From: Octopus bimaculoides | Taxonomy: Eukaryota | Assembly: GCF_001194135.2 (NCBI RefSeq) | Contig: NC_068997.1 | Location: 26,747,598 to 26,810,895, forward strand | Length of the DNA: 63,298 bases | Direction: 5' to 3' | In this document: in pieces, positions 3,929 to 59,524 of the stretch | Layout: every line of letters starts with the position of its first letter | Numbering within the stretch: the stretch's first letter is position 1 | The notes under the pieces: generated by a model | What the model saw: the letters and a program-made list of their open reading frames with translations, nothing else | What the model was told of the DNA's origin: nothing | Database searches by the model: none | Position numbers and translations under genes: made by a program

Positions 3929-3976
<48 letters not shown>

Positions 3977-3979
<3 letters not shown>

Positions 3980-35233: not shown

Positions 35234-36007
35234 GTAAGGCTTTCTGGCTGCAAACTTTTCTCGTTCTTCATTACAAACACTATTTATATATTTGTATTTT
35301 TTTTATTTATTTCCCACCCAGTCCTTGCTTCCCCAGAATATTGCAGCTCTTCACCCTGACAGAACTGTTGCTACTGAACTTTCAAGAATTAGTCGTAACA
35401 GTTCTGGGATGGATGTGAAGATGTTTTTTTGGGGGGTTTTTTTTGACACAAGAGTTATTCCCCTTGTTTCTTTTAGATTTTTTTTTTTTCAGACATTCAT
35501 CTACTTCTGATGAATTTTAACTTTTTTTATTGAATAATTCACATGATACTCTCAGATTAATCAAACTTATTCAACTCATATTACATACATGTCACCCCAT
35601 ACAATTTGCTTGTCATATTAGATGGCATTTCACATAATTTATTGCATAGAAGTTTGTCCTGTCCATGTCAGCAACTCTATAGAACAGTTTAGTCTATTTC
35701 TACTTCTTTGATATACACCTCTCTCAGACATAGTCATAGCAGCTGTGTCATTAAGAAGTTGGCTTCCCAACCACATGGTTTTGGGTTCAGTCCTACTGTG
35801 CATCACCTTGAACTAGTACTTTCTTCTATAATAACCTTAGGCCAACCAAAACCTTGAGTGGATTTGGTAGACAGAAATTGTATGAAACTGTTGTGTATGT
35901 CTTTCTGTGTGTTTCTGTCTTTGTATGTCTGTATGTATGTCTGAGACAAAGTAATCTGGTTGTGAAAGGGTTAATAAATACTTTACTTTTCTGTGGTTAT
36001 TCTACAG

Positions 36008-36141
36008 CCATTCCTGTCAACATCCAATTCCATCATCAGCTACGATTCTGATACATCTCTGTCAGACGAAGAAGAGGATGATATTGAGTCTCAAGAAGAA
36101 GAAGATGACAAAATATGGACTTCAGGGAGACCAACAACACT
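36008..36141 (+). CDS. DMXL2: DMXL exon (phase 0-2)
   Basis: ttctacag / CT-gtgagt; PFLSTSNSIISYDSDTSLSDEEEDD... Confidence 0.92.
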
Positions 36142-36190
36142 GTGAGTTTAAGGGGTTTGACCACTGCCAACTGGTCTCTGGTACCCATTC

Positions 36191-36290
36191 AATATCTATG
36201 TGTTTATTTCTATATCAATATCTATGTGTTTATTTCTATATCAATATCTTTCTATATCAATATATTTCAATATCTATGTGTTTATTTTAT
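36191..36290. repeat. Tandem repeat, 26-bp unit AATATCTATGTGTTTATTTCTATATC
   Basis: Two exact and several partial copies. Confidence 0.8.
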
Positions 36291-37787
36291 GTAGATAGAC
36301 ACTAAACTGTAGTTCTTACAACTGATTTGTTTGAGAATTCTTCACTATCTGTGTAGTATATAATCCAGTACCATCTGGTCATATTTGAGTGGCCAGTGAC
36401 TGAATAGACAAAAGCCTAGTAAAGAGTTGAAGGCCAGTAACATCCATATCCTGCGGCAGAGATGGTTGATAGCAGGATTGCCAAGTCCAGTAAGACATTT
36501 GAATGTTAGTTATTTTGTTACATCAATATTTAATTCTATGCTAAGACATTGAGCTGGCTGAATTGTTAGCTTCATGTACAAAATACTTAATAGCATTTTG
36601 TCTGTCTCTACATTCTGTGTTCAAATTTCACAGAGAGGAACCAGTAGATTACATCGACCCTAGTGCTTAACTGGTACTTACCTCATTGACCTCAAAAGGA
36701 TAAAAGGCAAAGTCGACTGAATTTGAACTGAGGTTGACCTATCATTTCATCCTTTCGGGGTTGATAAAATAAGTACCAGTTGAACTCCGAGGTCAATGTA
36801 ATCGACTTACCCCCGCCTCCAAAATTGCTGGACTTGTGCTTAATTCTGTATTGGATTGATCAAGGCCCAGAATCCTCAAAACTGAGTGAAGTGGAGAAAA
36901 TAGGCAAAAAAAATATTGAGATGCTCCAACAGCAAAAATACTATGGTAAAACGCTCAACTCAATTTCACTAAAATAAGAACAATAATAAAACTGAAGTAA
37001 AGAACAAGTAATATATAGTGCAGGGGGGGAAAAAAACAAAAACGCTGTTCTGTTTATCATTATGTGGCATATTTCAACTTATTTNNNNNNNNNNNNNNNN
37101 NNNNNNNNNNNNNNNNNNNNNNNNNNNNNNNNNNNNNNNNNNNNNNNNNNNNNNNNNNNNNNNNNNNNNNNNNNNNNNNNNNNNNNNNNNNNNNNNNNNN
37201 NNNNNNNNNNNNNNNNNNNNNNNNNNNNNNNNNNNNNNNNNNNNNNNNNNNNNNNNNNNNNNNNNNNNNNNNNNNNNNNNNNNNNNNNNNNNNNNNNNNN
37301 NNNNNNNNNNNNNNNNNNNNNNNNNNNNNNNNNNNNNNNNNNNNNNNNNNNNNNNNNNNNNNNNNNNNNNNNNNNNNNNNNNNNNNNNNNNNNNNNNNNN
37401 NNNNNNNNNNNNNNNNNNNNNNNNNNNNNNNNNNNNNNNNNNNNNNNNNNNNNNNNNNNNNNNNNNNNNNNNNNNNNNNNNNNNNNNNNNNNNNNNNNNN
37501 NNNACACACACACACACACACACACATATTTGACGGGCTTCTTTCAGTTTCCATCTCCCGAATCTACTCACAAGGCTTTGGTCGGCCTGAGGCTGTAGTA
37601 GAAGGCACTTGCCCAAGCTGCCACACAGTGGGATTGAACCCAGAACCATGTAGTTGGGAAGTAAGTTTCTCCCCACACAGCCACACCTGATGTTTTTATT
37701 ATTAATATTTTTTTTTTTTTTTTTTTTTTTCTACGATTAAAATATTTATTGAGTTGCCTTTGAAATCGATGTGATTCTGTCTTGCAG

Positions 37788-37983
37788 AACTTCCTGTCAG
37801 TTCTCCGTTGCTACATGCTGTTCTGAAGAATCTGGAACAATGGGAGGAAGTGTTACATAGCAAGCTAGAATTGTTCTCTGGGCCACCAGACAATTACATT
37901 CCTCACTTGATCCTGGATGTTGAAACAGGAATACCTCACACAAAATATGAGGCTTTACTCAAACCTCATAACTCACCCTTCAT
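37788..37983 (+). CDS. DMXL2: DMXL exon (phase 1-2)
   Basis: tcttgcag / AT-gtaaga; ELPVSSPLLHAVLKNLEQWEE...GPPDNYI...NSPF. Confidence 0.95.
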
Positions 37984-38538
37984 GTAAGATAGTTTCTAAA
38001 CTCACTGTATTTTATATATAGATGCATGTGTATTAAGTGCAAGGTGCAGGCGCAATGGCCCAGTGGTTAGGGCAGCAAATTTTGTTGTCTCTAGGGAGTG
38101 TCATCGTGCCAATATAATTAACATACTGGTTCAATTCCACTCATTTATTAAATATCTGGGGTTTTTTTATTTGTTTTTTTTTTTGACAAAGCTCTGCTTG
38201 CTGAGAAGGTTGCAAAAAAGCAATGAAAGGGCTTTGACAAAAAATAGCAGATATTTAATAAATGAGTGGAATTGAACCAGTGTGTATGTTAATTATATTG
38301 GCATGATGACTCTCTCTAGACACAACAAAATTTACTCCTTAGTTACATGTGTTTCAATACTATATGGTAGGTGTTTTGTGTTACAACATACTGCTTGTGA
38401 TCATTGTACACCATATCATATAAGCTTAAATTAAGATTCTCCATTGACCACGTCATCGCTTATGTTTACTATTCATTATGTTTACCATACTTCCATCTCC
38501 ATCTCACATGTTGCGTCATCTCTGCTTTATATTTTCAG

Positions 38539-38659
38539 AAACCACCACTCAACCTTACCCTTGAAACGTCTCTGGTTTCTCATTGTCAAAGAAGAATACC
38601 TGAAGGATGTGTTTATTCGCTACATCTTCCGGAAGAAAAGGTTTCTTGAAGATACTGAG
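38539..38659 (+). CDS. DMXL2: DMXL exon (phase 2-0)
   Basis: attttcag / GAG-gtgagt; LPLKRLWFLIVKEEYLKDVFIRYIFRKKR. Confidence 0.95.
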
Positions 38660-38723
38660 GTGAGTATTTCTTGTCAGTGCTGGAATTGCTCTAACTTTCC
38701 TCTTCTCTCTTATGTGTGTGTGC

Positions 38724-38770
<47 letters not shown>

Positions 38771-39093
38771 TCTATATATATAGTTCAAATTTACAGAAAA
38801 CAAAAGGTGAAGACATGTGTAGGAATAACAAGCTAGCAATGGTTATAACTGAGAATCACAATCACATAAGAAGTGTCATTCATTTCTAGTCTGCTATCAT
38901 TGAAACATGTTCGTCCTGGCCATGAGGGAAGCACTACTCTGCATGGAAACGTGTGAAAGTTGGTGACAGGAAAGGCAACCAGCTGAGGAAAATTTACCAC
39001 AATAAATTCCCATCTGACCCATGCAAGCATGGAAAAGTCAATATTAAAACAATGACAGGAACAACAATGATGATGATGATGACAAACAAGCAT

Positions 39094-39151
<58 letters not shown>

Positions 39152-39219
39152 ACAAACACTTATGCACACTCATACAGATGGATTTCAAGAGCTTTTCTTT
39201 TTCTTTATTTCTATTTCAG

Positions 39220-39324
39220 ATAACACTAAACTCAGGAGACAGCGAAAACTCTGAGAAGAGTTCATCTTTGATGAAAGTTATTCACAAAGAACAAGATATC
39301 ATTACAGCATTCGCTATAAATCAG
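39220..39324 (+). CDS. DMXL2: DMXL exon (phase 0-0)
   Basis: tatttcag / CAG-gtcagt; ...MKVIHKEQDIITAFAINQ. Confidence 0.94.
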
Positions 39325-39776
39325 GTCAGTTTCTCTTCTCACATGTTTTTCTTACCTATCACTCTATAACTTCTATTTTGTAAGATGCTTGTACATAAAT
39401 ATCACACAAGTTACATATCACGCACTACAATGTTACCGGGTTTCAGACTCCTGCTGAACTTAGACTGGCTCTATCTGAACATTCAATGTCATTGTTAAAA
39501 TAAATAGTCCCATCATCAAAATCTTGAAGCTATGAGATAATACGTTTATTTATTCAAAACAATATGAATAATTAAGCATTACATGATTTACAGCCTACAT
39601 GATTTGAGAACAGGATGGTTGTCCTTACCCTAAAGTTTACGACTTGATTAGGAGTGTAGTGGTTGGGTGGTGGACCTGATATGGAGGGTAGTGAAGCAGC
39701 ACCTGGGTAGAAATGTATCCATCGTCTGTGTATGAAATAAAGTCATGTATATATGTGTGTATATCCTCTATTTCAG

Positions 39777-39901
39777 GCCAATCCCAACTGTTTGGCATTG
39801 TCTACTCAGAAGGAAATTGTGGAATTAGATATTGGTGCCTTACTAAATCCGCCAGCCTGGTTAGGTGATGAGAATGAGTACGACATTGAGACCTTGATCA
39901 A
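39777..39901 (+). CDS. DMXL2: DMXL exon (phase 0-2)
   Basis: tatttcag / AA-gtaagt; ANPNCLALSTQKEIVELDIGALLNPPAWL. Confidence 0.93.
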
Positions 39902-40125
39902 GTAAGTTACTCCTTCTTCTTCATTCAGCTTTTATATAACTAACTTACTAATTAAGATCTATAACAATAGGTGTAGGTGTAGCTGTGTGGTTAAGAAGTT
40001 TGCTTCCCAACCACATGGTTTAGTTCGATTTCGATTTCACAATCTGTTTTATAATCAGAAGTAAGCTAACAACTGTCTTTTCCTGCACATTATCATTGTT
40101 ATGTGTGTTTTACTTTATTTTACAG

Positions 40126-40294
40126 TACGACTGCTTATGGATACGATGAATCTGACTTCGTTTTGGTTCAGACGCCGTTCGACCAGCTTCCCAATACCGC
40201 TGTATCCACTCCTGGCACACCAATGTCTTATAACTCGGCCAACACTGCAATACCAAACATACAACAATACAACTCAACTAATCGGGCTAATGTT
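40126..40294 (+). CDS. DMXL2: DMXL exon (phase 2-0)
   Basis: attttacag / GTT-gtaagt; TTAYGYDESDFVLVQTP...STNRANV. Confidence 0.88.
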
Positions 40295-41094
40295 GTAAGT
40301 AAAATCACCTTTTCTTTTTTATTTCAATAACATTATCCTAACTCCTATATGATTTTTCTTTGTTGTTTGTTTTTTAAAACTTTTTTTTTTAAATGTTTTA
40401 AATTCTTCTTAAAAAGTATCTGACATCCATATATTCATTATAGGTGTTGTGTCTGAGAATTTTTCATTTTTGTGAGATTAATATATCTTAACCCTTTTAA
40501 TTAATATATTTTAACCCTAAATGCAATAATACATTAACATTGTTTGTTTTTGTAATTAATTTTATAAATAAATCCTTACTGAGCCATTAAATGGAAGTAA
40601 ACATAACAAAAGGTTCCTACATAATACCATAATAGACTGTTTTTATTTCAATATGGACATTCTCAAATAAGTTTTTTGATAGATTTAGATGGGGCATCTG
40701 GTGGATTAGCATCATAGAACCTGAGGTGGTCTAGGTTGGGTGGGCATTGTAGAACCCGGGGTAGTCTCCAGTTGACTGATATCAAAAGTATTAATATAAC
40801 TGAATCTCCCCTCTCTATGCTAACCCCTCAACTATAAATATAAAATATTAATAATGTGTGTGTGTGTGTGTGTGTGCATGCATTTTTATTGCAAGTTGGC
40901 AGAATCATTAGAGCTTTGGACAAAATGTTTCACAGTGATTGTTCAGTCTCTTTATGTTCTGAATTCAAATCCCACTGAGGTCTGCCTTTACCTTTCATCC
41001 TTTCAAGTTCAACACTATTAACTAAGACTCTCTCCTGAAATTTATGAGCCTTGTGCCTGAATGAGAAACTTTGTTGTTTATTATAATTATTTTA

Positions 41095-41225
41095 TGGAAC
41101 TTGTGAAAGAGGAAGACATGGGACAAATTAGTGAAGGATGCTCTCGGGACTTTGAATCTTATGTAGGAGATGACAAAGAACCTGGACTCCTGGCAATATG
41201 CAGTACTTGAGAAGACATGTCCATC
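41095..41225 (+). mobile_element. Decayed 3' end of an RTE-like LINE ORF2
   Basis: ..KTWDKLVKDALGTLNLM*EMTKNLDSWQYAVLEKT resembles RTE C-terminal motifs. Confidence 0.55.
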
Positions 41226-42336
41226 TTGGTGAAACAGAGGTTCTGGGAGCATAATATGAATATACACAGCTGGGCCCCTCATCCACCTCCAACTGTAGTC
41301 TTCTGCCACTGTAATTAAATGAGGCAGAACGGTATATTTTAACATCTTTTCTGTGATACCATTTATCTTTCTCACTACCCAGAACCACTTCACTTAACAT
41401 CCATCCTACATCCTTGACATTGTCCCTCTTCACTCACATTTTACATTGACACCAACAAATTATCCCTCCCTCTTCATTGAATCACCTCCTGTCAACTTGT
41501 TTCTGTCACTGTATATCTCTCGCTTTTACCACACACTCTATCTCTCCAATCACACTCTTACAGCTTACCCATCAACGCATCTTCTCCCTTTCTCTCATCC
41601 TTCCCCTGTTTACTGTATCACCACTCTTCTGCTCTTCACCCAATCAGCACCTATTTTCCATTCCGTGACCTTCCCTGTAACTCCTGTGTATCATTGATCA
41701 TCCCCTTTGCTATTCATCTCTTGTTCATCTCTCTTCCCTAGTCCATATCTAATCATTATCTACTTTCCCTAACCTTCCATCTGAGTCATATTTATCATCC
41801 TCTCCCTCAACCCTTGTTCATCATTCAGTAAATTCACACCTTTACCCTATCTATAGCCAATCTTCACATTCTTCATAATCTCTTGCAGCCTCTACCCATC
41901 CTCCTTCTTCTGTCTCCAGAGCCAACCCTGACAGTTTGTTCCCAGCTTGTTCTTTTCTATCTTTCAAGCTCCACCTTTAATACTCTCGCCCATTCTTATA
42001 TGATACAAGGTAGCAGTATATTTCCTCAACAACATGAAACCTTTTCTGGCTCCTTCTCTCATACGTTAACCCCTTATCCCACAACATAGAGCTGCTTCCC
42101 TCTCTACTAAAGCTCCACTTCAGTTGAAGAGGAACTTAGTCTTGCGAGCTACTTGGTGACCGCACTAGTACTGGTGTCATGGAAAATGCATCCCGTGTGC
42201 ATTGTACAGTGGTTGATATTAAGAACAGCATCCAGCCTTAGAACTCATTCCACAGCAGATTTTAGAGTACAATGTAGTTTCATGACCAGTTGACCTGTGA
42301 AACTATGCAATTCATGCCAACATGAAAGCTGAGATG

Positions 42337-42374
<38 letters not shown>

Positions 42375-42606
42375 CCTAACTGGCCTTCGTGCCGGTGACA
42401 CATAAAAGCACCCACTACACTCTCGGAGTGGTTGGTGTTNNNNNNNNNNNNNNNNNNNNNNNNNNNNNNNNNNNNNNNNNNNNNNNNNNNNCTGCCAAAT
42501 CAGATTGGAGCCTGGTTTGGCCATCTGGTTCGCCAGTCCTCAGTCAAATCGTCCAACCCATGCTAGCATGGAAAGCGGACATTAAACAATGATGATGATA
42601 TATGTA

Positions 42607-42650
<44 letters not shown>

Positions 42651-42950
42651 TAAATTTCCAAATTAGGTTGGTAGAGATATACAATCCTAGCAGGTTAATA
42701 ATGCTAGCTAACCTCTGTGAGTGTAGAAAAACTCCAGTTAGTTTATTTTACTATCCTCAGTAGATCTTCACAGCAGTAACTCCACATGTCTCTATAGAGA
42801 CTGCATGTTGTCAGCAGAGAAGGAATAGTAAATCAATGATAATGTGAGCAGAGATTTATATATCCAGTTTTATGGATGCAGGTGCAGAAATGGAAAGACA
42901 TGATTGACTGCAAAATAAAACTAGATATATAAATCTGTTCTCCTTATTAT

Positions 42951-42989
<39 letters not shown>

Positions 42990-43324
42990 TATACATGTAT
43001 ACTTAAGTCTAGTACTTATTCTATTGGTGTCTTATGCCAAATCACGTAAGTCACAAGAACATAAGCCAGTGCAGGTTGTCAAACTGTGGTAGGGGACAAA
43101 CACAAAGACACACTTATATGTATGTGTGTGTGTATGTACACATTAGGCTTCTTTTAGTTTCTGTCTACCAAATCCACCCACAAGGCTTAGATTGGCCCTA
43201 GACTATAATGGAAGACACTTGCTCAAGGTGCCATGCAGTGGGCCTTAAACTGGAACCATGTGGTTGGGAGGAAAACTTCTTACCATACAGCCACTCATGC
43301 ACATGAACACACACACACACACAT

Positions 43325-43543
43325 ATAGTAATAATTGGTGAAGGAAACAAAAGATAGGTTTAATACTAGTCTTTATTAGTACAATGATCGTTTCAACTCA
43401 TCCTGCAACTGTCCATTATCAGTAGGATTCTGCACAAAATCCTACCCATAAGGGACAGTTGCAGGATGAGTCAAAATGACCATTGTACTGATGAAAGACT
43501 AGTGCCAAATCTATCTTCTATTTCTTTCATCAATTATTACTAT
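43325..43543. repeat. 219-bp fold-back inverted repeat (MITE or inverted Penelope end)
   Basis: Arms of about 105 bp, roughly 85% identical by eye, 8-nt loop at 43430-43437, TA at both outer ends. Confidence 0.85.
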
Positions 43544-43678
43544 TTAAACTAATACTACAGAATTCCTGAAGTAGATCCAGCAGAAATATGCACCAACCAT
43601 GGATGTCACCAGGTAGCCCAAACCGTGAAGTGAAGGTGCTTTACTCAACACACTAACTGACCCATTAATTAAAAAAAT

Positions 43679-43724
<46 letters not shown>

Positions 43725-44086
43725 CAAGAGTGTTAGAGGTTGTGAATCCAACCAACCAAGGGATAATATCTATCCAATACACTGCTGGTAGAATACCCAA
43801 TTATTGATATTGTATACTAGCCACAACTCTTTATACTGTGGTCCCAACAGTATATATTGTAACTACAATACAATATCCTCAACCTACAAAGTCGAGATTG
43901 TAATCCTTGTATTTCTTTTTCTATCCTCTCTCCCTCCTTCTCCTTCACCCACCCTAATTGTACACCATCTGTGAAATATTGATTTATATGACAAGAATTA
44001 ACTATTGATTTCTATGATGATGATTATCTACATGCACCTGTTTACTCAGAATAGCAAATAGGTCACAAGGTGTTGGATTACAAAGT

Positions 44087-44126
<40 letters not shown>

Positions 44127-44185
44127 ACACATTCTCTGACTGATGTGTGCATAACATTGTAGTGTATGTATGTGTGTGTGCATGT

Positions 44186-44343
44186 GTTTGATCCGGCTCC
44201 AGGCGACTTGAAGTTTTACAGGCTTCTAACAGAAATTCAGCTCATTTAGATTACTGAATCTGATTTTGGTAATCTGAGCCTAAACAAGCTAGGCTTCTCT
44301 TAGAAGCCTGCAAAACTTTAAATCTCATGGAGCCAGATCAAAC
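44186..44343. repeat. 158-bp fold-back inverted repeat
   Basis: GTTTGATCCGGCTCCA...GGCTTCTAA paired with TTAGAAGCC...TGGAGCCAGATCAAAC. Confidence 0.8.
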
Positions 44344-44350
44344 TGTTTTA

Positions 44351-44389
<39 letters not shown>

Positions 44390-45164
44390 TCCTACTAAAT
44401 GTGTTGAGTGCTTTTTTTATTTCTTCTATCCACTCATTCATATATGTATATGTGTGTGCATACATACATACATACATACATATAGAGGGAGAGAGTTGGC
44501 CAGAAGTCACCTGACAGTAAATCAAAACCATTTAATTCCAAGATTAAAACAAAAGATTCTTTTATATGAGACTTCGCTAATAAATAGACAAATGTTGAAA
44601 AAAAAAACAGTGATTTTAATTCACAGTATTCAATTATTAAACATTCATAATTGGAATGAATAAATAAAGTTGAATATTAAGTACTTAGGAAATTTTGATT
44701 AATGTCAGGTGATTTTTAGCCAACACTGTGTGTGTGTGTGTGTGTGTGTGTNNNNNNNNNNNNNNNNNNNNNNNNNNNNNNNNNNNNNNNNNNNNNNNNN
44801 NNNNNNNNNNNNNNNNNNNNNNNNNNNNNNNNNNNNNNNNNNNNNNNNNNNNNNNNNNNNNNNNNNNNNNNNNNNNNNNNNNNNNNNNNNNNNNNNNNNN
44901 NNNNNNNNNNNNNNNNNNNNNNNNNNNNNNNNNNNNNNNNNNNNNNNNNNNNNNNNNNNNNNNNNNNNNNNNNNNNNNNNNNNNNNNNNNNNNNNNNNNN
45001 NNNNNNNNNNNNNNNNNNNNNNNNNNNNNNNNGTGTCAGTAGAGAAAGGGACCGATGCACAATAGGTTGAAATGGTCAAACTGATTAAAAAAAATTATCT
45101 CTTGAATTCTGTTTTCTTGCTTGGAACATTGAAAATCGAACAGATGGGCTAAAACACATTCGGA

Positions 45165-45383
45165 TGTTTTGTCATGTTTCTTCCTGCTCTTCTGATTCTG
45201 CATTCAAATACTGCTGAGGTCAACTCTACCTTGCATCTTTTCAAGACTGATAACATAAGTACCAGTCAAATACTGGATTTGACTGGTACTTATGTTATCA
45301 GTCTTGAAAAGATGCAAGGTAGAGTTGACCTCAGCAGTATTTGAATGCAGAATCAGAAGAGCAGGAAGACACATGACAAAACA
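45165..45383. repeat. Near-perfect palindrome (107-bp arms, 5-nt loop) derived from a SINE family B copy
   Basis: 45165-45271 is the reverse complement of 45277-45383 with one mismatch (45178/45370); loop ACTGG. Confidence 0.95.
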
Positions 45384-45906
45384 AGATGTCTGATATGCTA
45401 ACAATTCTGCTAGCTCAATAATGAATGGCATCAAATTGTGGTACAAGTCCAGTAATTTCAAAGGAAGATGGGAGTTAGCCTATTACATCGACATCAGTGA
45501 TTTTATTTCTGGGGTTGATAAAATCAACTATCCCTGCTCACCCAAAATTTCAGGCCTTGTGCCTATATTAGAAAGAATTATTATCATTATAATGTAAGAA
45601 TGCATGGCCCAGTGCTTAGGGTTTTGCACTCACAATTGTGAGAATGTGGTTTCAGTTCCTAGACTAGGTGGTGTGTTGTGTTCTTGAGGAAAAACACTTC
45701 ACCTCACATTGTTCTACGATCACTCTGACACCAGGTACATGGTACACAATGCACCTGTTCAGCAACATTGATTTGATAGAGGAAGTGAGCTACTCTACAG
45801 TACATACATTTGATCATTATAAAAGAATCCTTTGCTGTACAGGTTGTTCAGCAAAAAGCTGAACATTCATACATTGTCTTTGACAGGAAAGTCCATCATT
45901 ATTATA

Positions 45907-45943
<37 letters not shown>

Positions 45944-47104
45944 GACTGGAGCCTGGTGTTGCCATCCGGTTTCACCAGTCCTCAGTCAAATCGTCCAACC
46001 CATGCTAGCATGGAAAGCGGACGTTAAACGATGATGATGATGATGATGATGATAAGGTGGCAAGCTGACATGATCAACTTCTGCCAAGGTCGACTTTGCC
46101 TTTCATCCTTTTGGGGTCGATTAAATAAGTACCAGTTACGCACTGGGGTTGATATAATCGACTTAATCCGTTTGTCCCTCCTTGTTTGTCCCCTCTGTGT
46201 GTAGCCCCTTGTGGGTAGTAAAGAAATAAGAATCATTAGCATGTCAGGTTAGTGGCATTTCTTCTGTCTTTACAGTCTGAGTTCAAATTCCACTAAAGTC
46301 AACTTTCCCTTTCATCCTTTAGAGGTCAATGAAATAAGTACCAGTTACATATTGGGATTGATATAATCAACTAACCCCCACCCCAAAATTTCAGACCTTG
46401 TGCTTTTAGAAAAAAATATTTTTATTTTTTTAAAGGCAGCAAGCTGGCAGAATCATTAGCATACCGGACAAAATGCTTAGCAGCATTTTGTCCAACTTTA
46501 CATTCTGAGTTCCATGAAGTTGACTTTGCTTTTATCATCCTTTCGGGATCAATAATATAAGTATCAGCTGGGATCAGTGTAATCGACTAAACCCGTCCAC
46601 CCCAAATTTCAGGTCTTGTACCTTCAGTGGGAAGAATTATTCATCCAATTTCTTTTAAGTAGTTAATAACAAATCCTTTATTTATTTTATTATTTCAGAA
46701 AATCCCTTCCAGCTGTCACTCTTTCAATAGTCAGTCATTACTCTGTTTAGTTACACCCACAACTTGTCTTGTAAACATACTGCCAGTGTATGAGAGAGAG
46801 AGACACGTATATAATTTTGATTGCCATATCTTTACATTATACAGACAGAGATAGTGGGGGAGAGATATAGTTATTGATAGGCAGAAAGATAAAACTACGC
46901 ACTTTTAACTTATAATTTTGTTCATAGCTAGGCATATGTTTATCTATTGACTTCAGCACCTTAACTGGTCATTTGATCTCTTTCTCACTTTGATCCTGAC
47001 ATAAAGCTATTTCTTATCATTTGTATTGATTATTTAAAATGTCTACTACTTTTTTTGTTACTATTATTTTTTTCCCCTGAATTCATATCATCTGTTGCCG
47101 TACT

Positions 47105-47314
47105 GCCTGACTGGCCTTCATGCAGGTGGCACGTAAAAGCACCCACTACACTCTTGGAGTGGTTGGCGTCAGGAAGGACATCCAGCTGTAGAAACTCTGC
47201 TAAATCAGATTGGAGCCTGGTGTAGCCATCTGGTTCACCAGTCCTCAGTCAAATCGTCCAACCCACGCTAGCATGAAAAGCGGACGTTAAACGATGATGA
47301 TGATGATGATGATG
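47105..47314 (+). mobile_element. SINE family A copy
   Basis: GCACGTAAAAGCACCCACTACAC...GCGGACGTTAAACGATGATG; similar + copies at 42375-42600, 45945-46052, 49070-49235 and 61835-62010. Confidence 0.85.
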
Positions 47315-47500
47315 TAATAACTACCTTGTTAGTGGTTAAAACAAAATCAAAAAGTGACAGTAAAGCACTTGACAAATCTTTGCTTTCTTTTCTATAGTGT
47401 TTTTCTCAGGGACAACAGTGCTGTGGGGTGTCTTTTCCATCTACCAACAACCTTGCTAAGTTATGCTCTGATAGGGTCATATATATAAATATGTGTGTGT

Positions 47501-47548
<48 letters not shown>

Positions 47549-47751
47549 ATGAAACTCAAGTCACAAGACAAACTCTCAACTTAAAAAAAAAACTGTCCTC
47601 TGCAACTTGTATTGAGCACACCTTTCTCATTTGTTCCGCATTAATAATGTACATATATATTATATCATGCTAGCATGGAGGGCGGACGTTAAATGATGAT
47701 GATGATGATATATATATATATATATATATACACCTTTTTCNNNNNNNNNNG

Positions 47752-47783
<32 letters not shown>

Positions 47784-48492
47784 CTTTTTCACTTTTTACC
47801 TGTTTCAGTCATTAGACTTATTTTTTTAAGCCTGGTATTTATTCAATTGGCCTCTTTTGCCAAATCACTTAGTTACAGGGATGCAAACACACCAAAACCT
47901 GTTGTCAAGCAGCGTGGGGTGGGGAGGACAAACACGCACATGCATATATATATGACAGGCTTCTTTCAGTTTCCATCTGCCAAATCCACTCACAAGGCCT
48001 TGGTCGGTCTGAGGCTGTAATAGAAGGCACTCAAGTCAAGTGTGACTGAATCCAGAACCATGTGGTTGGAAAGCATGCTTCTTACCACACAGCTACGCGT
48101 GTGTGTAGATGTGTGTGTGTGTGTGTATGTATATAGTTTCCAGTTCTTTTAATTACATTGAAGCCCTAACTCTTGTCGGAAGAATTTAGAAATATTTATC
48201 CACACAACGGAACTAACCAGGAAATAGTTTTCTGTAATATTTCCCCTCTATGCTCATTTCACAGTACACTCTGCCACTATGATAACATTTTACTGGGATG
48301 GGATTCTTAGATTTAAATAACTTCCATTTGGTTTTAAGAGGTTTTTTCTTTTTTTTTTTTTTCAAGGTTTTAGTCAGTCTCTATAATGTCTAAGGAAATA
48401 CATTACCCATATGTTTCATTCAATTGATTTTGATAGTAATTTAAATTGGAGTGGATTTTGGAAAATAACTAGCTTTTGCATTCGTTGGTCTG

Positions 48493-48840
48493 TTAAGATG
48501 GTGCTTGGAACAAAAGCGAAATATATATTAGTATATTAAGATGTTTGTATTAGGAATATAGCAAAATGTAAATTGGTAAACAAAAATAGTATTTGATACA
48601 TAAAAATGACAACTGTATATTGGTATACTATGATGGTGTTTGGTACATAAAAATGAGAAGTATATATTAGTATGTTAAGATAGTGCTTGTTATATAACAA
48701 AATATAAGTATATATATTGGGATATCAATATGGTGTTTGAAACATAACAAAAAACAAATGTATATTTGTATATTAAGACGTTTGGAATGAAACAAAAGAT
48801 AAATATACATTGATGTCTTAAGATGGTGTTTGAATACAAA
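48493..48840. repeat. Degenerate tandem repeat, about 45-bp unit
   Basis: Recurring TTAAGATGGTGTTTG..ACATAA.AAAA..TATATATT.GTATA. Confidence 0.65.
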
Positions 48841-49721
48841 TCTCAAATATATACATTTGAGGACAAACTCTTGTTAAATCATTTGAAATTTAAGGAGGGT
48901 GTGTGTGTGTTTCTCAAAAAAATTTGTCTCTGTTTTCATAATCCTTCTCTTTCACCTAACCACAAAGTATATTTCCAAGACTTGAATGGTTTAATTATAA
49001 TTCTCAAGTTTTAATTAACATTACCTATGTATTTGATACATATATGATACAAAAACCACATGAAAGTACAAATCCACTCTGTGGGGTGGTTTGTGTTAGG
49101 AAGGACATCCAACTGCAAAAAAAAAAAAAATGCCAAGACAGTAACAGTAGCCTAGTGTAGTCTTCTCCTTGGCCGGCTCCTGTCAAACTGTCCAACCCAT
49201 ACCAGCATGAAAAGTGGCTGTTAAACGATGATGATGGAACATTGCTACGGCCATCACAACAATAATAATCCTTTCATTTATTTTCCACAAGAGCCCACAC
49301 GTTCTTACAAAACGTGTGTATGTGTTACAGAGAGGATATGTGGAGGGGATGTACACACACATATATATATATATATATATATGTATAAAAATGGAAAAAC
49401 TTGATTAAAAAAAGAAAAGAAAGAACTACTCAAACAGTAAAGAAGGTGCTGTTTTTGTTACAAGTTTTCCACACCCTTAAAAAAAAGTCCCCTTCCTTCA
49501 AAAATAACCCCTCCATCAAAACCTTTATTTAACTAAAACCACCTTTATTGAATGTTCTATATTTGACCTGTTCATCATGACCTGATCTGGTTGTCTTTTC
49601 TCTCTTTTTTTTTTCTCTTCTCCCCCCTCTCTTTCTTTCTACCTTTCTTTCTTTCTTTCTTTGCTGCCGTTGCCACTGCTTGGCTGGATAAAAAAAAAAA
49701 AATTGGTAAATTTCTCTACAG

Positions 49722-49805
49722 ATCAAAGGAATTAATCTGTCAGGGCTTGGAACCCCCCAGTTCTGTCAGTTTGTCCGCGATAGAAGTAGACGCTTGCTAC
49801 AGTCG
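49722..49805 (+). CDS. DMXL2: Candidate alternative cassette exon of DMXL (84 nt, phase 0-0)
   Basis: tttctctacag / TCG-gtaaga, long upstream pyrimidine tract; IKGINLSGLGTPQFCQFVRDRSRRLLQS with no stop. Confidence 0.7.
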
Positions 49806-50644
49806 GTAAGAGCACAGCCTAACCACCTCCACCACCACCTCCTCCTCCACCATTGTCCCCCCTCACTCCCACCTTTCCGTTTATTCATTTGCTTGGTACT
49901 GTTGTAGTCGTTGTTCATGCTCACCCTGGTGTTGTCATCATCATTGTTGTTGTTGTTGCTGCTACTACTGCTGCTGCTGCTGCCGCTCTTATGAATGTTG
50001 TTTTTTAATCATATTATTTTTACCGTTTTCTTATTTAGATGCTTGCAGTTTTAACTTGTATATGCATGTGTTTGGATAAATGGATGTATAAGCGTGTGTG
50101 TATGTAATATGCACATATGTATGAATGCATGTCTGCATGTCTACACACCTGTGCACATACACATCTATATACACACGTATATATGGAAATGTATACATAT
50201 GTTCATTTAAATTTTATCTGGTGTATACATATGTGTGTGCGTTTATGTGTGTATATATGTGTGTGTCTGCATAAGCACTTGCACAGAAAGCTGTGTGTGT
50301 TTGTACAGAAAGGTTATGACATCTGTTAAGATGCATGTGTGTATGTTAGAATGCAAGTTATAATTTCGGCATCATATATATATATATATATTTGCATATG
50401 TGTGTATGTGTACATTTGCATATGTAAGTATATATACATGTAGATACATAAATATGTATATATACATGCATATATATATATACAATTGCTGATGTGTGTG
50501 TGTGTGAATATGCATGCATGTATATATGTGTGTATATATATGACAGATTCAAACATGGAGTAACATGGGTGCAGTATTTAGCCCATGTTGAGACTAGATT
50601 TATCTTCTCTTTGGTTATTTTTTGTTTTTCTTTTATCACAACCG

Positions 50645-50682
<38 letters not shown>

Positions 50683-51254
50683 CACAGTTTTATTTACTTG
50701 TTTCTGTTTTGAACAGTCGGCACCACCACCACCACCGCCATCCCCTGCCCCACTCCCCAGTCCCTCTGTGACACACCTGGAATATCTTAGTGCATCTTTC
50801 TGCAAATATCAAAGACACCTTTCTCACTCATTTCACTGCGTAGTATTCTTCAATATTTTTGCAATATTCTTTCATTAGACAATTTTTGTTTCATAGAATT
50901 ACATTTTCTTTGTTAATGACTTTTGTTAGTGTTCTGGTTCTTGTCATTGTTTTTGTTATTGTTTGTTTGTTTTTTTGGTTGTTGTTTTTGTTTTGTCTTT
51001 GTCAATTTTTAATATCTCTGTTTTGTTTTTTCTAAAAATCTTAAATAGAACTTTCGATATTGTCTTTTTTTTTTTCTTATTACTTTTTACCAATTCCTTT
51101 TTTACTAATTCTGTCTTTTGACTTTTTGACCTCCAGTATTGCCTGGCACATGAAAGCATTTGAATAGATGGTGATCCTTGTGTGTGCGTGTGTGTGTGTG
51201 TGCACGCATGTGCGCGCATGATTCTTTTACTGTCAATGTTATGTGTGTGTAAGG

Positions 51255-51470
51255 GCGGTGAACTGGCAGAATCGTTAGCACGCTGGGCGAAATGCTTAGC
51301 GATATTTTGTGTTCTGAGTTCAAACTCCGCCGAAGTCGACTTTGCCTTTCATCCTTTCGGGGTCGATTAAATAAGTGCTAGTTATGCACTGGGGGTCGAT
51401 GTAATCGGCTTAACTTTGTCTGTCCTTGTTTGTCTCCTCTGTGTTTAGCCCTCTGTGGGCAATAAAGAAA
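51255..51470 (+). mobile_element. Well-preserved SINE family B copy
   Basis: GGCGGTGAACTGGCAGAATCGTTAGCACG...GAGTTCAAACTCCGCC...CCTTTCATCCTTTCGGGGTCGAT; CpG-rich, so young. Confidence 0.85.
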
Positions 51471-51876
51471 TAAATGTTATGTGTGTGTATATTTATGTAT
51501 GTATGTATGTATATATGGAAATCCTTAAAAAGATGTACATTGTTCTATGTGTGTGTTTGCATGTGAATATATGTGTACAGTTTCTTATATTCTCCATGTC
51601 ATATGTATGACACAATTCCCTGTATGTATGTGTATATATGTATGTGGATATTCTGTTTCATATATGTGCGTGTGTGTTTGTATTTATGTATATGTGAAAG
51701 TAGACGGACACAGTCCTGTTTGTGTGTGTATGTGTGTTTTTATGTATGTATGTGTGTATGGTTCTTATATATATTCTCTTTATTACTCTTATATATACAT
51801 GTGTGCGTGTTTGAATGTATTTATGTATGCATATGTATTTAATGATATTTTTAATATAATCTTTCATATTATATTC

Positions 51877-51932
<56 letters not shown>

Positions 51933-52756
51933 TTGTTATTACATTGAGTGTATATTGATTCTCTTTAACTTAACAGTATCATAATTAATTCACATTACTC
52001 TACTAAATAAATTAATAATATTTGTGTGAATGCATTTTGTGTGTGTCTTTGCTGTTCATATGTCTTTAAATTTTTTCTCGTGTTGGCAGTTTTAAACTAA
52101 TATGCAAATGTATTTTTACTGAAATACTTTTTTCTTTCAGACATAGTGTATATAGGAATAAATTATCTAATGTGTCCTTCCTTTCTTTTAAAATGGTTTT
52201 TTTTAAGATGGTAGTGTGATATTAGGGATTTATTTGCTGTTCTTAGCAACTGCAAGAGAGGCTCACTTGTCTCATTGCTTAGTTTTGTTTTTTGTTATCT
52301 TTGTATGGTCGTAGATCTGTACCCTGGTAGAGCAGGTTTCTCATCAAAGTCATTTAGTCTTGACTGTCTCCTCTTTTCAGATGAATTTGTCATGGCTGGA
52401 TGGCATAACTCATCTCAGACTAAGCTATCCTATGTTGTTTTTCTTTTTTCATTTTCTAAAAGATGTGGCTGCTATTTCTACTGATCATATGGAAACACTC
52501 ATTTACTGGTTGCTTTGTTATTGATGTAATTACAGGCATTGTATGTTAATTCTAAGGATAACTGGTGATTGGTCTGTTGGAATTATCAACCATACTGTTA
52601 AATTATGATATAGAATAAATTAAAAAATAGATTTAAAAAATCTGATTTTGGGAAAATGACATCTATGGCTTTATTAAAATGTTTAAAGCAACATATTGAG
52701 GTTTAAAGGTATCAGTTTAAAGAATTTTTTTTGTATTTTGGATGGTTCATCAGTTT

Positions 52757-53145
52757 AACGTTGCTCGCTGTCCACTGAGGTGCGGCCATCTTTGAACTGG
52801 TTTTACTACTCCTTTATTTGTGTTTTCCCCATGGCATCATCTCCAAAGGTCTTCTGAATCTTCTCGATAGTTTGGGCTTTTGTATCACCATGATTTTGGC
52901 AGAATTTGATACAGTATCTTTGCTCAATGCACTCAGTCATCTTGACTCAAAAAGAAAAATTGCACAGCATACTCTTCATGTCTGTCCTCAATGTGTCACT
53001 GCAGGCGAATGGCACAACCTACAGATATAAAAATGTTTGCACATGCTCCAGGAAGGATGCAGCCACCTAATACCCATGTGGATTTTGCACATGCATGATT
53101 ATTTTGTGCAAAAACTCAAGGTCGGATACTTTTTGACTACACCTC

Positions 53146-53146
<1 letters not shown>
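52757..53146 (-). mobile_element. 5' fragment of a mariner transposon
   Basis: Minus-strand TIR-like CGAGGTGTAGTCAAAAAGTATCCGACC next to (TA)n; N-terminal HTH remnant MTECIEQRYCIKFCQNHGDTKAQTIEKIQKTFGDDA...FKDGRTSVDSE from the ATG at 52940. Confidence 0.85.
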
Positions 53147-53192
<46 letters not shown>

Positions 53193-53964
53193 CTGTAGCT
53201 TAACAATCAGCTTTGAGAAGCTAATGTAAATAGTACAGAGACACTTGAGAAAGATTCATTTATGTATAATTCTTGAATGTTATCCAACCCAGCACTTTTT
53301 TCTTTCAATCAGTTTCTTTCAAAATACACAATTGCTATTTCATTGACCTTGCAGAATCATAATTTTTATTTGATATCTTTAATAGAAATAAAAACAGAAA
53401 AAAAGGAAAAGGAAAATTACATTGAGAAGTTTTTAATTTCATTAGATATTTTCTTAAGCTAAATCATTGGCATTATGTAGATATTTTCAGTAAAAATATT
53501 TTGGGAAGTTTTCTGTAAAACCGTTTTAATACTATGTTTGGTGTCTAATTTCGTATGGACTCAATATTGCCCATTGTTTGTGCATGGCATTAGTAAATTA
53601 AAAAACAGGTCACAAGTGATGTAATTGGAACAGAAGCCCACTAAAGTTATGTCCTATGTTTGTTGTATGTGGCATCATCTGGGAAACAGTTCTTCAAAAG
53701 GAGATGCTGGATTGTTCCATTTAGTTTTCGCAGTATCTCTGTGGAGAGTTTTGCTATTTGTGAATTTTTCAGAAGGAAAAAATCCCATCCAATCAATATT
53801 TGACTTGTTTAATATCTTTATATATTTTTTTTATATACATACATTCATGTGTAATATAAATATACAGATATAGGGCAGGGAATTGCCAATTAGTAATAAA
53901 ATTAATAATTAACAATTTTACCAAGTAGTTCAGTATGAAAAAACCCTTTATTGGTAAAACCATT

Positions 53965-54398
53965 TATAATCATAAATATATAGGGCTTAGCATGAGATGC
54001 TTCACCAACATACTGAAAATTTAGAAATAGCAGTCAAATAACTACTGATTCCAAACTACAAATTTTTCTCTAACGGATGGCAATATTTATGGCACACACA
54101 GAACAAAAACAGAAGAGAAAAGCAAAAACAAACCTGCCTTTAGTTAACCATGTACGACGTTTCACGGTTAAGAGTATAAAGCTACCCTACTCCGATCATC
54201 AGCATGGTGTTCGATAAATTTGAAAGTGTCTATATACTCATGGGAATTTGACCATGCGACATCAAAAACACATGAGCAAGGCATTCACAAAATTTATCGG
54301 CTAGTAAGTTCAAACACTTCACCCCAAGAATCTATTCCATGTGCGCCACAAATGTTGATGAAGCATCTCATGCTAAGCTCTATATATTTATGATTATA
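53965..54398. mobile_element. Probable Penelope-like element remnant with 46-bp inverted ends, containing the hammerhead
   Basis: 53965-54010 is the reverse complement of 54353-54398 with 2 mismatches; hammerhead inside; microsatellite-rich surroundings. Confidence 0.55.
54147..54208 (-). ncRNA. Minimal type I hammerhead ribozyme motif (Penelope-like element type)
   Basis: Minus strand: ACCAUG-CUGAUGA-UCGG...CCGU-GAAA-CGUCG-UA-CAUGGU; 6-bp helix I, near-palindromic mini helix III, GUA cleavage triplet; U.U at the base of helix II is atypical. Confidence 0.7.
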
Positions 54399-54422
54399 TT
54401 CATGTGTATGTACATTCATACA

Positions 54423-54463
<41 letters not shown>

Positions 54464-54689
54464 ATGTGTATGTGCGTGTGTGTGTGTGTGTATGTGCATG
54501 TGTGTGTGTGTATGTGCATGTGTGTGTGTGTGTGTGTGTGTAAACTTCTAATATTTATCCTAGATAAATAGACAGACAGAGAGACACACAGATAGATGTG
54601 TATTTATATATGTATGTATACATACACCCACATAAGATTATAAGAAAACCTACTGAGAGCCACAGAATGACTCTTGGAAAGTGTGAAGT

Positions 54690-55110
54690 TCCAGCCAAAC
54701 AGACATGGTAGTATTATAATACTGTAGATAAGTTATAAATGCTGAGAAACAGGCTTAGACAGGTGAAAGAAAGAGGAAAGAGTAGCAAAGAAGAGTATGA
54801 AGTAACTAGAAGACAAGTTGGATGTCAAGTGCACTTGACAAAGGAAGAAGAGGTTTTCACATATTCAACAATGTGAAGCATTCCAAGATTGCAAAGTAAT
54901 GTAGTAGAATGGAGGTATTGCTGGGGAGAAGTGTGTACAGAATGATAGCATTACACTTGTTCTTAATGATGCCAAAAAGAAAGAGGCATGGAATTGCTAT
55001 TATGAGAAGTTGTTGAAAGACGAGAATGAATGGGAGAATGTATTTACCTCAAGTAGACCCAACAGAGAGATTAGCCATTCTAGTTGACAATAACATGGTC
55101 ACCTGTACAA
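54690..55110 (+). mobile_element. Decayed RTE-clade LINE ORF2 fragment
   Basis: Broken frames give GEKCVQND..TLVLNDAKKKEAWNCYYEKLLKDENEWE, resembling the RTE endonuclease-RT linker. Confidence 0.6.
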
Positions 55111-56249
55111 TTAAGTCTTCAGCATTTAAACTAACCATATTCAACCCAAATATTCTACCAGTTTTATGTTCAGACTGGCCAGCTCCAGCCTCTCACACCT
55201 ACCCTACATTGTCATTCTAAAAATAAACAGTTACATCATTGAAATCTAAAAGCTACAAGATAATGCATGATTAAAATTAATGTGAATAAATGGACATTAC
55301 ATTTGACAAATCTGAATATTTAAGGGTTAACATTTGAAGACAAGGAAAACAACTAGACTGTGAAGAATAGTTGCTGTGACACTTGAAATATCTGTCAAAA
55401 TAAGTCCTGTGGGAGTCACTTGTATAGTTAACCAGATAATACAGTGAGATATCATACTATCAATATGAACTACTGTTTACTTCTTGCTTCACACTGTTGC
55501 TTGATGAGGCCAGGATCATCCCATGTTAATAGTCCCAGAGTTGTCATCAGAAGAGCTACACCTGAGATTTTTTTGTCATGGTCTCCAAAATTGTTGTGGT
55601 ATTTCAGTAACAATTCATGGTTTAGAGTTTAGAGTTTCTTTTCTGAATGATTTCTTTATAGTTTCACCAATATTTTTGTTGTTTTTGTTTGGTCATTCCA
55701 AATAGTTTTTGTTGTTTTCTTTTAACTTTGCATCTCATTTCTGTCATCACATTTGTCAGTTGTTCATCTAAAACCAAAGTAGTTTTGGTAGTCTTAGTTT
55801 TTCTGACAGACATTCTCTTAGTTTTATCTTCTTAGCTTTTTCTTTGTTATTTTATTTTTTCTCACAATTAAAAAAAATCCATGAATTTCATTTCCATTTC
55901 AATTTACAGTAGAATAATTAAATGTCATGGTCATATGCCATTTTTTCTCTCTTTTCTAATTTCTAGACATTTTAAAATTCTTTTTTAAAAAAAAAAAAAA
56001 AAAAAAAANNNNNNNNNNTATGAGTGCTCTTTTATATATTTTTTTTTCAATCTCAATAATTTTCATTGTTCTTTTTTTTTTTTTTTATAAATTGCTCTAT
56101 TTTACAATATATTTCATCTGTAATAGTATGCTAATTAGAAACCCATGTTGTATTTGCATGTTGATAATTCAGTGAAAGTGATTTTAATGAAATGTTTCCT
56201 TTTTCTTCTCACTCTCTTTCTCACTCTCTCACTCTCTCTGACTCATCAG

Positions 56250-56310
56250 ATAATTCAGAGAAATGTCACTGGTGTCAGAAGAATTGGAGCTCACCCCCAT
56301 CTACCTCACT
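56250..56310 (+). CDS. DMXL2: DMXL exon (phase 0-1), start of C-terminal WD40 block
   Basis: actcatcag / T-gtaagt; IIQRNVTGVRRIGAHPHLPH. Confidence 0.93.
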
Positions 56311-57592
56311 GTAAGTCAATCATTTCTGATTTTTGTTACTGTTTACTATTTGTAGCTCACAAATATATGCACACACACACACACACACACACATACACAC
56401 TCTAGTAATATGATAATCAAATTGGGTAGTATTTCATGTTCAGATCGATCCAATGATAACAGGTGTACAATTAACTTCTATTCCTTTTGTCCTTGTTAAA
56501 ATTCAAATTCTAGTGGCATTGTCTACACTACACTGCATTAGACATACCAAGTAATACAAAGCCAGCAACACACACCAACATGACTTCATCCAGAAGATAA
56601 GGCTATGTTAGTCTAGGAACATTGTCTTGACCTTGTGGTGGTTGTAAATGGTTATCACCATCATATAAGTGAGGTTGCTCATTTCCAATCTTCCATGAAA
56701 AACATGGCTGGCCATGAGAAATATTATTGTGCCTGGAAACAAGTGAGGGTTGGCAGTAGGAAGGACATCCTGCTGTAGAAAATCTGAATCAACGCATTCC
56801 ATTGAAGCCATGTAAGCAATGGGAAAGTAGACTTTAAAACAATGGTGATAGTGACAGATATAAATAGCAACTGTTTACTTTAAAGTTTGACTACTAAAAT
56901 TGGTTTTAGAAAACAAAGGATGCTTTGAGAAGTTAGTTTTTAAGTAGCCTTGTTTCTGCTTGACAAGTTGGTTTGACCCTGAACTTTTTTTTTGTGTCTT
57001 GTAAAAGTTGGCAATCAATCTACTCTTCATACTTTGTATTTCTGTATTCGTAGTGAGATAAGGAAAGCAATGCATAGAGGTGCAGTGGTATTGTATTATC
57101 AAAAATGAATGAATGTCATCATCATACAAGTGTTGTCCTTTGTTTCCAGTCTTCCTTGAAAACATGTCAGGCCATGGAGAGATATTACTTTTCATGGAAA
57201 CAGATGAGGCAAGAAGGGCATTTAGCTGTAGAAGATCTGGCTTCATGAATTCCTTCCAATCCATGTGAGCATTGAAAAAGTGGATGTTAAAACGAATATG
57301 TTGATATTTTATATATATATATATATATTTCACTTAGATATTGTGAAACAAATGGCCTTGTGTAGAACTGAACTCAACTACGAGTCCACTGTATTTGATA
57401 ACAGAAACAGTTGTGAGCTACTGAAGTTCATAAGATAATCTCTTATTCCTTTGTCATCTCATTTTCTTATGTGTGTACACACACACACACTCACACACAA
57501 TGAAATATGTGGCTTTTGAAATGCTTGTTGTAAACACAAGATTATTGTATTGTCTATTATTTATTGTTGTTTCACTGAACATGTTCATACAG

Positions 57593-57723
57593 ATCTGACC
57601 GGGAGCACTGATGGCAGTGTCCGCATGTGGGAGTGGGGCCATCACCAGCCATTGTCTCTGCTACGACAGCCTGGCTGTTTCTCAAAGGTCACCCGTACCC
57701 TGTTCAATGCCCAAGGTAATAAG
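57593..57723 (+). CDS. DMXL2: DMXL exon (phase 1-0)
   Basis: ttcatacag / AAG-gtaaga; YLTGSTDGSVRMWEW...FNAQGNK. Confidence 0.96.
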
Positions 57724-59446: not shown

Positions 59447-59524
59447 TGTTGTGTCAGCGACGCTGAGGGATCAGTGTGCCTCTGGCAAGTTGGTATTGGA
59501 AGCAATTTCAATAAACCAATTATG
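59447..59524 (+). CDS. DMXL2: DMXL exon (phase 0-0)
   Basis: cgtttcag / ATG-gtatga; CCVSDAEGSVCLWQVGIGSNFNKPIM. Confidence 0.93.

Follow-up and report, generated by a model that had tools for sequence, protein, structure and literature searches.

A conserved, probably alternative 84-nt cassette exon before the C-terminal WD40 propeller of a DMXL/rabconnectin-3-alpha gene in Octopus bimaculoides

The 63,298-nt stretch of Octopus bimaculoides DNA analysed here (RefSeq assembly GCF_001194135.2, contig NC_068997.1, positions 26,747,598 to 26,810,895 of the forward strand; hereafter the window) carries a large, multi-exon gene on its plus strand, which belongs, by sequence, to the DMXL/rabconnectin-3-alpha (Rav1) family. 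A sequence-only reading of the window had proposed that the longest intron of this gene conceals five phase-0 cassette exons at the hinge before the C-terminal WD40 propeller. Our results indicate that one of these segments, 49722-49805, is a real exon with competent splice sites, which is frame-neutral and encodes a peptide conserved at this junction in distant protostomes, whereas the other four are best explained by chance.

Host gene and the junction before the C-terminal propeller

Rabconnectin-3-alpha is the large subunit of a complex that reassembles the V-ATPase. Three exons of the host gene scored above the curated cutoff (27 bits) of the Rav1p_C family (PF12234), with 60.5, 81.2, and 28.9 bits, and together they span positions 107-626 of the profile. 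A single exon encoding 372 amino acids (aa) retrieved 567 homologs, and each named one among them is either a dmX-like or a Rav1 C-terminal domain protein; the best homolog matches come from the gastropods Lottia gigantea and Batillaria attramentaria, at ~50% identity. The exons from 37788 onward are collinear with the dmX-like proteins of many phyla. PDB sequence searches with two queries returned generic WD40 chains, matching the residues 3' of the junction described below, and no DMXL chain. This places the gene in the DMXL/rabconnectin-3-alpha family, in keeping with its earlier description as coding for a V-ATPase assembly factor.

The exons rebuilt around the junction are 37788-37983, 38539-38659, 39220-39324, 39777-39901, 40126-40294, 56250-56310, and 57593-57723, and they splice to one frame that is open from 37788 to 57723. 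Between the fifth and the sixth of them lies the intron 40295-56249 (16 kb), which is the longest in the window, as had been noted. It interrupts the protein in phase 0 at the junction RANV/IIQRN, read here as ...NSTNRANV (ending at 40294) followed by IIQRNVTGVRRIGAHPHLPHYLTGSTDGSVRMWEW (starting at 56250), and immediately precedes the first blade that can be recognised in the C-terminal WD40 propeller, in agreement with the sequence-only reading. The two constitutive exons that flank it are as follows.

40126-40294, plus strand: upstream constitutive exon, 169 nt, ending ...NSTNRANV at the phase-0 donor GTT/gtaagt; its spliced frame is open and aligns to the DMXL linker of homologs.
56250-56310, plus strand: downstream constitutive exon, 61 nt, encoding IIQRNVTGVRRIGAHPHLPH, with which the C-terminal propeller's first recognisable WD repeat begins.

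Positions 853-1012 of a Logan contig from a related species (L001, run ERR12370320) aligned to window positions 40120-40279 with 77.5% nucleotide identity. The alignment was confined to the exon 40126-40294, and the flanking intron did not align. Because introns are unalignable at this distance, an exon-sized island of conservation at 49722-49805 would be informative.

Splice sites and homology of the candidate segments

The five proposed exons are listed below with their scores from position weight matrices (PWMs), which were built from sites in the gene's own tblastn-anchored exons (28 acceptors and 27 donors).

46699-46770, plus strand: candidate 1, 72 nt; acceptor 11.3, donor 3.2; no homology above shuffled sequences and an ordinary codon score; chance, not an exon.
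47410-47475, plus strand: candidate 2, 66 nt; acceptor 7.6, donor 0.6 (rank 274 of 1024); no homology; chance, not an exon.
48367-48372, plus strand: candidate 3, 6 nt after a T-run; acceptor 12.2, donor GTCAGT 3.5; 2 aa, too short for homology; treated as chance.
49722-49805, plus strand: candidate 4, the cassette exon, 84 nt, phase 0-0, encoding IKGINLSGLGTPQFCQFVRDRSRRLLQS; acceptor ctctacag/ATC 6.2, donor TCG/gtaaga 8.4.
50717-50839, plus strand: candidate 5, 123 nt; acceptor 0.4, donor -8.1, both below all real sites; no homology above shuffled sequences; not an exon.

Each of the five segments is preceded by AG, free of stops, 72, 66, 6, 84, or 123 nt long, and followed by GT, exactly as had been described. 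The remaining strong acceptors of the intron (43561, 52141, and about 55966), which had been set aside earlier, do reach stops within 2-3 codons. However, these properties are common in this intron. Of its 747 AGs, 346 (46%) are followed by a stop-free segment that is a multiple of three in length and ends at GT, and the same holds for 37 of the 86 acceptors with at least 70% pyrimidine upstream and for 13 of the 27 with at least 80%. In the whole intron, 783 AG..GT pairs enclose such an open segment. Open segments after 5 of 8 strong acceptors are about what the 46% rate predicts. The statement that all five match the phase of the host junction is literally true, but it provides no independent support, because any open segment of a multiple of three nucleotides fits a phase-0 junction automatically. 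The five-segment pattern, taken as a set, is therefore not beyond chance, and the earlier caveat that some of the segments may be chance proved apt. In an AT-rich intron of 16 kb, the combination of an AG, an open frame, and a GT is worthless as a criterion unless it is set against a null model.

The splice-site scores separated candidate 4 from the others. Under leave-one-out PWMs, the real acceptors of the gene range from 0.7 to 13.1 (median 8.8) and the real donors from 4.5 to 12.0 (median 9.5). The donors of candidates 1, 2, 3, and 5 all fall below the weakest of the 27 real donors (4.5), whereas the donor of candidate 4 ranks fifth among the 1024 GTs of the intron; the observation that only 49722 has a strong donor thus stood up to scoring. 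The acceptor of candidate 4 is mid-range, with 12 of the 28 real acceptors scoring lower. When both sites were required to score at least as high as the weakest real site, 8 pairs passed in the intron, none of them candidate 1, 2, 3, or 5, compared with 10 in the reverse-complement control. When both sites were required to reach the lower quartile of the real sites, exactly one pair in the intron passed, and it was 49722-49805. For candidate 5, the frame is open largely because it runs through a (CCN)n proline repeat.

Homology likewise singled out candidate 4. Candidates 1, 2, and 5, compared with 48 long homologs, gave no match above shuffled sequences. In the alignment of 17 junction-spanning homologs, the Batillaria attramentaria protein KAK7475121.1 carries 28 extra residues, VKSLSSLGIQNPALTHCILDRSRRLIGV, exactly between ...GRGTNV and NMRRSVTGVRRIG. 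A Smith-Waterman comparison of this insert with the six frames of the intron gave its best score, 48, in the frame of candidate 4, and the next best score was 28; the score of 48 was reached by 1 of 200 shuffled sequences. The Batillaria segment, likewise 28 aa long and placed at this junction, has K, G, P, and DRSRRL in common with candidate 4; its N-terminal half has diverged.

A stronger match was obtained for the mite Tetranychus urticae. The two isoforms of its dmX-like protein 2, X1 (XP_015792669.1) and X2 (XP_015792670.1), differ solely in residues 3115-3141 of X1, AKHNFPGSNNPQFCQYVIERSRHILKP, which lie at this same junction, before ...GTRRLCSHPTLPYYLSG; in the mite, the segment is annotated as optional and is frame-neutral. 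This 27-aa insert scored 68 at 49710-49904; the runner-up reached 31 within the intron and 32 over all six frames of the 63-kb window. Shuffled insert queries scored 33.2 +/- 3.3 with a maximum of 47, so that the real score lies ~10 standard deviations above them. Over 23 aligned residues, candidate 4 and the mite insert have 12 identities, among them PQFCQ, V, and RSR. When candidate 4 was spliced between RANV and IIQRN, it aligned gap-free through the junction with both the Batillaria and the mite proteins. The insert lengths (28 aa in the window, 28 aa in Batillaria, and 27 aa in the mite) are nearly equal, and the shared core of the segment reads PQFCQ[FY]V.[DE]RSR..L. In three nematode proteins (Mesorhabditis, Bursaphelenchus, and Heterorhabditis), a shorter related stretch, ...P[FW]IIDRSR..L.K, was found at the same junction.

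The segment is missing from 14 of the 17 junction-spanning representatives. The taxa without it include human DMXL2, mammalian DMXL1, lamprey, Ciona, sea cucumber, acorn worm, the mosquito Sabethes (both isoforms), Caenorhabditis, and Trichuris.

A tblastn search of the window with 150 whole homologs did not recover the 28-aa exon, and it took targeted Smith-Waterman scans to locate it. Word-indexed searches of proteins, queried with the junction and the cassette together or with a five-sequence profile of insert-bearing junctions, returned only P0001, a genomic read-through fragment from a related species, and P0155, a nematode fragment, and neither search yielded a protein or transcript of the octopus. 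For this 129-aa insert-bearing fragment P0155, AlphaFold2 run on the single sequence gave an uninformative prediction, with a mean pLDDT of 37.7.

The relationship of candidate 4 to other parts of the gene was also examined. Pairwise scores of the candidates against one another were at the level of shuffled sequences, and no second copy of candidate 4 was found in the window, where the next best score was 33 against a self-score of 143. The idea that the cassette arose as a duplicate of the 3' end of exon 40126-40294 was also considered and received no support (p = 0.2-0.99).

Two separate likenesses were noted in this region of the protein. The N-terminal half of the cassette (49731-49760, INLSGLGTPQ) resembles the constitutive linker INLPWLGSTQ of vertebrate DMXL1 (Smith-Waterman score 26, unadjusted p = 0.006), possibly by chance; in the multiple alignment, the vertebrate residues are instead paired with the end of exon 40126-40294. 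At the neighbouring junction 39324/39777, the Ptychodera flava isoforms X1 and X2 differ solely in an optional 13-aa segment, GAWANITCNGVYS. An Apostichopus japonicus model has a similar 13-aa segment at this junction, and its X1 and X2 lengths differ by 13 aa. No counterpart of this deuterostome segment was found in the window intron 39325-39776.

Flanking sequence and interpretation of the segment 49722-49805

The sequence on both sides of the segment was inspected, and the following elements were found.

49586-49677, plus strand: pyrimidine tract, 92 nt, 90% pyrimidine, rich in CUCU and UCUU, 45-135 nt upstream of the cassette AG.
49690-49702, plus strand: A13 run between the pyrimidine tract and the 3' splice site (ttggtaaatttctctacag/).
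50063-50139, plus strand: three TGCATG hexamers (50063, 50126, and 50134), 258-334 nt downstream of the donor, in low-complexity TG/TA-rich sequence.

A 125-nt stretch that overlaps the pyrimidine tract is 82% pyrimidine, a content unsurpassed by any stretch of equal length on the same strand of the window (top 0.04%), and the 300 nt upstream of the cassette contain 15 TCTT/CTCT motifs, compared with a mean of 4.0. The tract may thus represent a distant polypyrimidine tract and possibly a PTB-type regulatory element. Downstream, three TGCATG in 500 nt, compared with a mean of 0.4, fall in the top 3% of window positions, which is suggestive only, and a (GCT)n/YGCY cluster falls in the top 2%, partly in low-complexity sequence. 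The hexamers could be Rbfox-type intronic enhancer sites. In better-studied animals, a displaced CU-rich tract upstream and UGCAUG/YGCY downstream are hallmarks of regulated cassette exons. The segment resembles the tissue-regulated, often neural, cassette exons controlled by PTB, Rbfox, or MBNL in that it is short and symmetric, lies in long introns, follows an extreme displaced CU-rich tract, and has UGCAUG and YGCY within ~350 nt downstream; it differs in that the likeness consists of motif counts, partly in low-complexity DNA, and the same action of these factors in molluscs is assumed.

Taken together, we consider it probable, with moderate confidence, that 49722-49805 is one genuine, ancient, and most likely skippable 84-nt phase-0 cassette exon, and that the other four segments arose by chance. 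The exon would divide the intron into two of 9.4 kb and 6.4 kb. The view that it can be skipped follows from three observations: the frame is kept either way, most orthologs are annotated without the segment, and the segment is the sole difference between the two T. urticae isoforms. Alternative use of the exon in the octopus itself is suggested by these comparisons.

Several observations weigh against this interpretation. Its codon usage supports the exon weakly (log-odds of +0.07 bits/codon, where the real exons have 0.02-0.39; null p = 0.09), 28 codons being too few for this measure to discriminate, and the 20 nt before its AG contain only 55% pyrimidine. The segment was recovered from no more than five other taxa, and the nematode match, although positionally consistent, is not significant alone (Smith-Waterman 26-27). 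The mite, a chelicerate compared here with a mollusc, has its X1 and X2 isoforms from computational RefSeq models. For Batillaria, the closest relative recovered across the junction, a single model includes the exon, which would fit a constitutive exon equally well. The candidate regulatory motifs lie partly in low-complexity sequence.

In the alternative that we take most seriously, 49722-49805 is a constitutive exon that the gene model missed, and the insert-free orthologs reflect lineage loss or the failure of annotation to capture a small exon. The included form alone is present in Batillaria, the only gastropod model across the junction, and in the three nematode models, and the donor, fifth of 1024, is strong. 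This explanation has to account for T. urticae, which has both forms, and for the 14 of 17 representatives, from many phyla, that do without the segment; moreover, the exon is symmetric, so that skipping is harmless to the frame, and its acceptor is only mid-range, the pyrimidine tract is displaced, and candidate regulatory motifs are dense around it. We therefore regard it as a substantial possibility, but not the likelier one. That the insert match is a coincidence, or that the segment is a decayed relic which is not spliced in this species, seems to us very unlikely. In favour of this reading, the peptide has only 28 aa, one of the 200 shuffles reaches the Batillaria score, and the codon bias is weak. 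Nevertheless, the mite score of ~10 standard deviations remains, and the match lies on the right strand of the homologous intron, is bounded exactly by an AG and a strong GTAAGA, has the right phase and equal length, and is still open.

The array of five phase-0 cassette exons that had been proposed to tune this linker by combinatorial or mutually exclusive splicing is hardly credible. All five segments do lie between an AG and a GT and hold an open frame whose length is divisible by three, and the acceptors of candidates 1 and 3 (11.3 and 12.2) are very strong. The same property, however, is found at 46% of the AGs in the intron; candidates 1, 2, 3, and 5 have donors below all 27 real ones and fail the weakest-site filter that the reverse-complement control passed 10 times; candidates 1, 2, and 5 have no homolog match; and the segments show no mutual similarity, with candidate 4 having no duplicate in the window. 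The locus resembles mutually exclusive exon arrays of the Dscam type in that one intron holds several phase-compatible candidate segments, but its candidates are dissimilar and of unequal lengths, the real exon has no duplicate, and it is not a member of that class. Of the five hidden exons first proposed, the genuine and conserved 49722-49805 is what is retained.

If the segment is a skippable cassette exon, skipping would yield a product equal to the insert-free gene model and to most orthologs. With inclusion, a basic, partly hydrophobic stretch of 28 residues (FCQFVRDRSRRLL) would immediately precede the strand VTGVRRIGAHP, the first of the C-terminal WD40 propeller. This may alter an interaction surface or the linker geometry, and might thereby change the binding of the propeller and its entry linker in the V-ATPase-assembly complex. 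As judged from the flanks, inclusion may be regulated by tissue, with the displaced CU-rich tract, a PTB-type repressor platform, acting to repress and UGCAUG/YGCY, of the Rbfox/MBNL type, acting to promote; the acceptor itself is only moderate, with its pyrimidine tract ~45 nt upstream. A bolder proposal, which we consider unlikely but worth stating, is that the exon has served throughout the protostomes as a splicing switch for more than 500 million years, being lost from or never present in deuterostomes, with neuronal inclusion under PTB/Rbfox-type control, and that it changes a partner of the propeller (WDR7, V1 subunits, or Rab3 GEP/GAP). If this were true, the reassembly of the synaptic-vesicle V-ATPase would have an isoform of its own.

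For the annotation, these results imply that the gene model lacks one exon and that the 16-kb intron is really two introns. A segment of 28 residues at the entry of the propeller, with a core kept from nematodes and mites to molluscs, suggests a functionally constrained and possibly regulated site, and it offers a concrete isoform pair for comparisons of partner binding. The role of the C-terminal WD40 propeller, which yeast Rav1 is without, is not understood, and the review of this complex makes no mention of splicing (PMC8264551). Literature searches found no paper describing this exon. Conserved, probably alternative cassette exons are in themselves nothing unusual, and database models of other species already contain the homologous segment. 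What remains is an annotation correction and a deeply conserved optional segment at the propeller entry; the five-exon array is not real.

Assembly gaps, repeats, and other features of the gene

The intron contains several assembly gaps, one of which lies among the candidates.

47741-47750: assembly gap of 10 N, inside an intronic (AT)n microsatellite, between candidates 2 and 3.

This gap lies 265 nt 3' of candidate 2 and 617 nt 5' of candidate 3, and no candidate spans it. The 33 bases on its left (ATAT...ACACCTTTTTC) reappear 7 bases into the right flank, so that the gap is a scaffold join of overlapping contig ends, with hardly any sequence lost, if any. The candidates are unaffected by it, because none spans it and the phase of an exon is independent of intron length. 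Further gaps in the same intron, at 42440-42491, 44752-45032, and 56009-56018, could hide sequence.

Comparison of the window with itself located repeats at 46000-46641, 47094-47314, 47666-48096, 48485-48834, and 49075-49236, and none of the candidates was overlapped. The possibility of an exonised repeat, that is, a pseudo-exon derived from a SINE or another transposable element, was rejected, with no candidate lying inside any copy of a window repeat family. SINE-like copies do surround candidates 1-3. This SINE-like family has many intronic copies with 70-94% identity, among them 47094-47314, 49075-49236, 45940-46051, and 42492-42599, with 3976-4195 and 22077-22270 on the minus strand, and its copies end in ...CCAGCATGAAAAGCGGACGTTAAACGATGATGATGA. 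A second repeat family, with the translation ...FHPFGVDKI..., occurs at 46074-46641 and at more than 15 other sites. An Rfam search of the intron gave no matches. Intronic open frames at 32511-33235 (plus strand) and at about 52809-52946 (minus strand) look, by eye, like remnants of Tc1/mariner-type transposases (...RQQQGGGVMLWAGFIGERLVGRVRVPEW... and ...IEQRYCIKFCQNHGDTKAQTIEKIQKTFGDDAMGKTQIKE, respectively).

Upstream in the gene, the frame breaks between exons 35094-35233 and 37788-37983 (window 35234-37787). Homologs have ~100 residues at this place, an acidic stretch followed by ...SWC..R.A......L..F....G.E..ELP, so that at least one exon is unrecognised or was lost in the 419-N gap 37085-37503. 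Downstream of the junction, exon 57593-57723 ends in tandem donors at 57715 and 57723, 8 nt apart (CAAG/GTAATAAG/GTAAGA), of which only 57723 stays in frame into exon 59447-59524 (...FNAQGNK/CCVSDAEG...).

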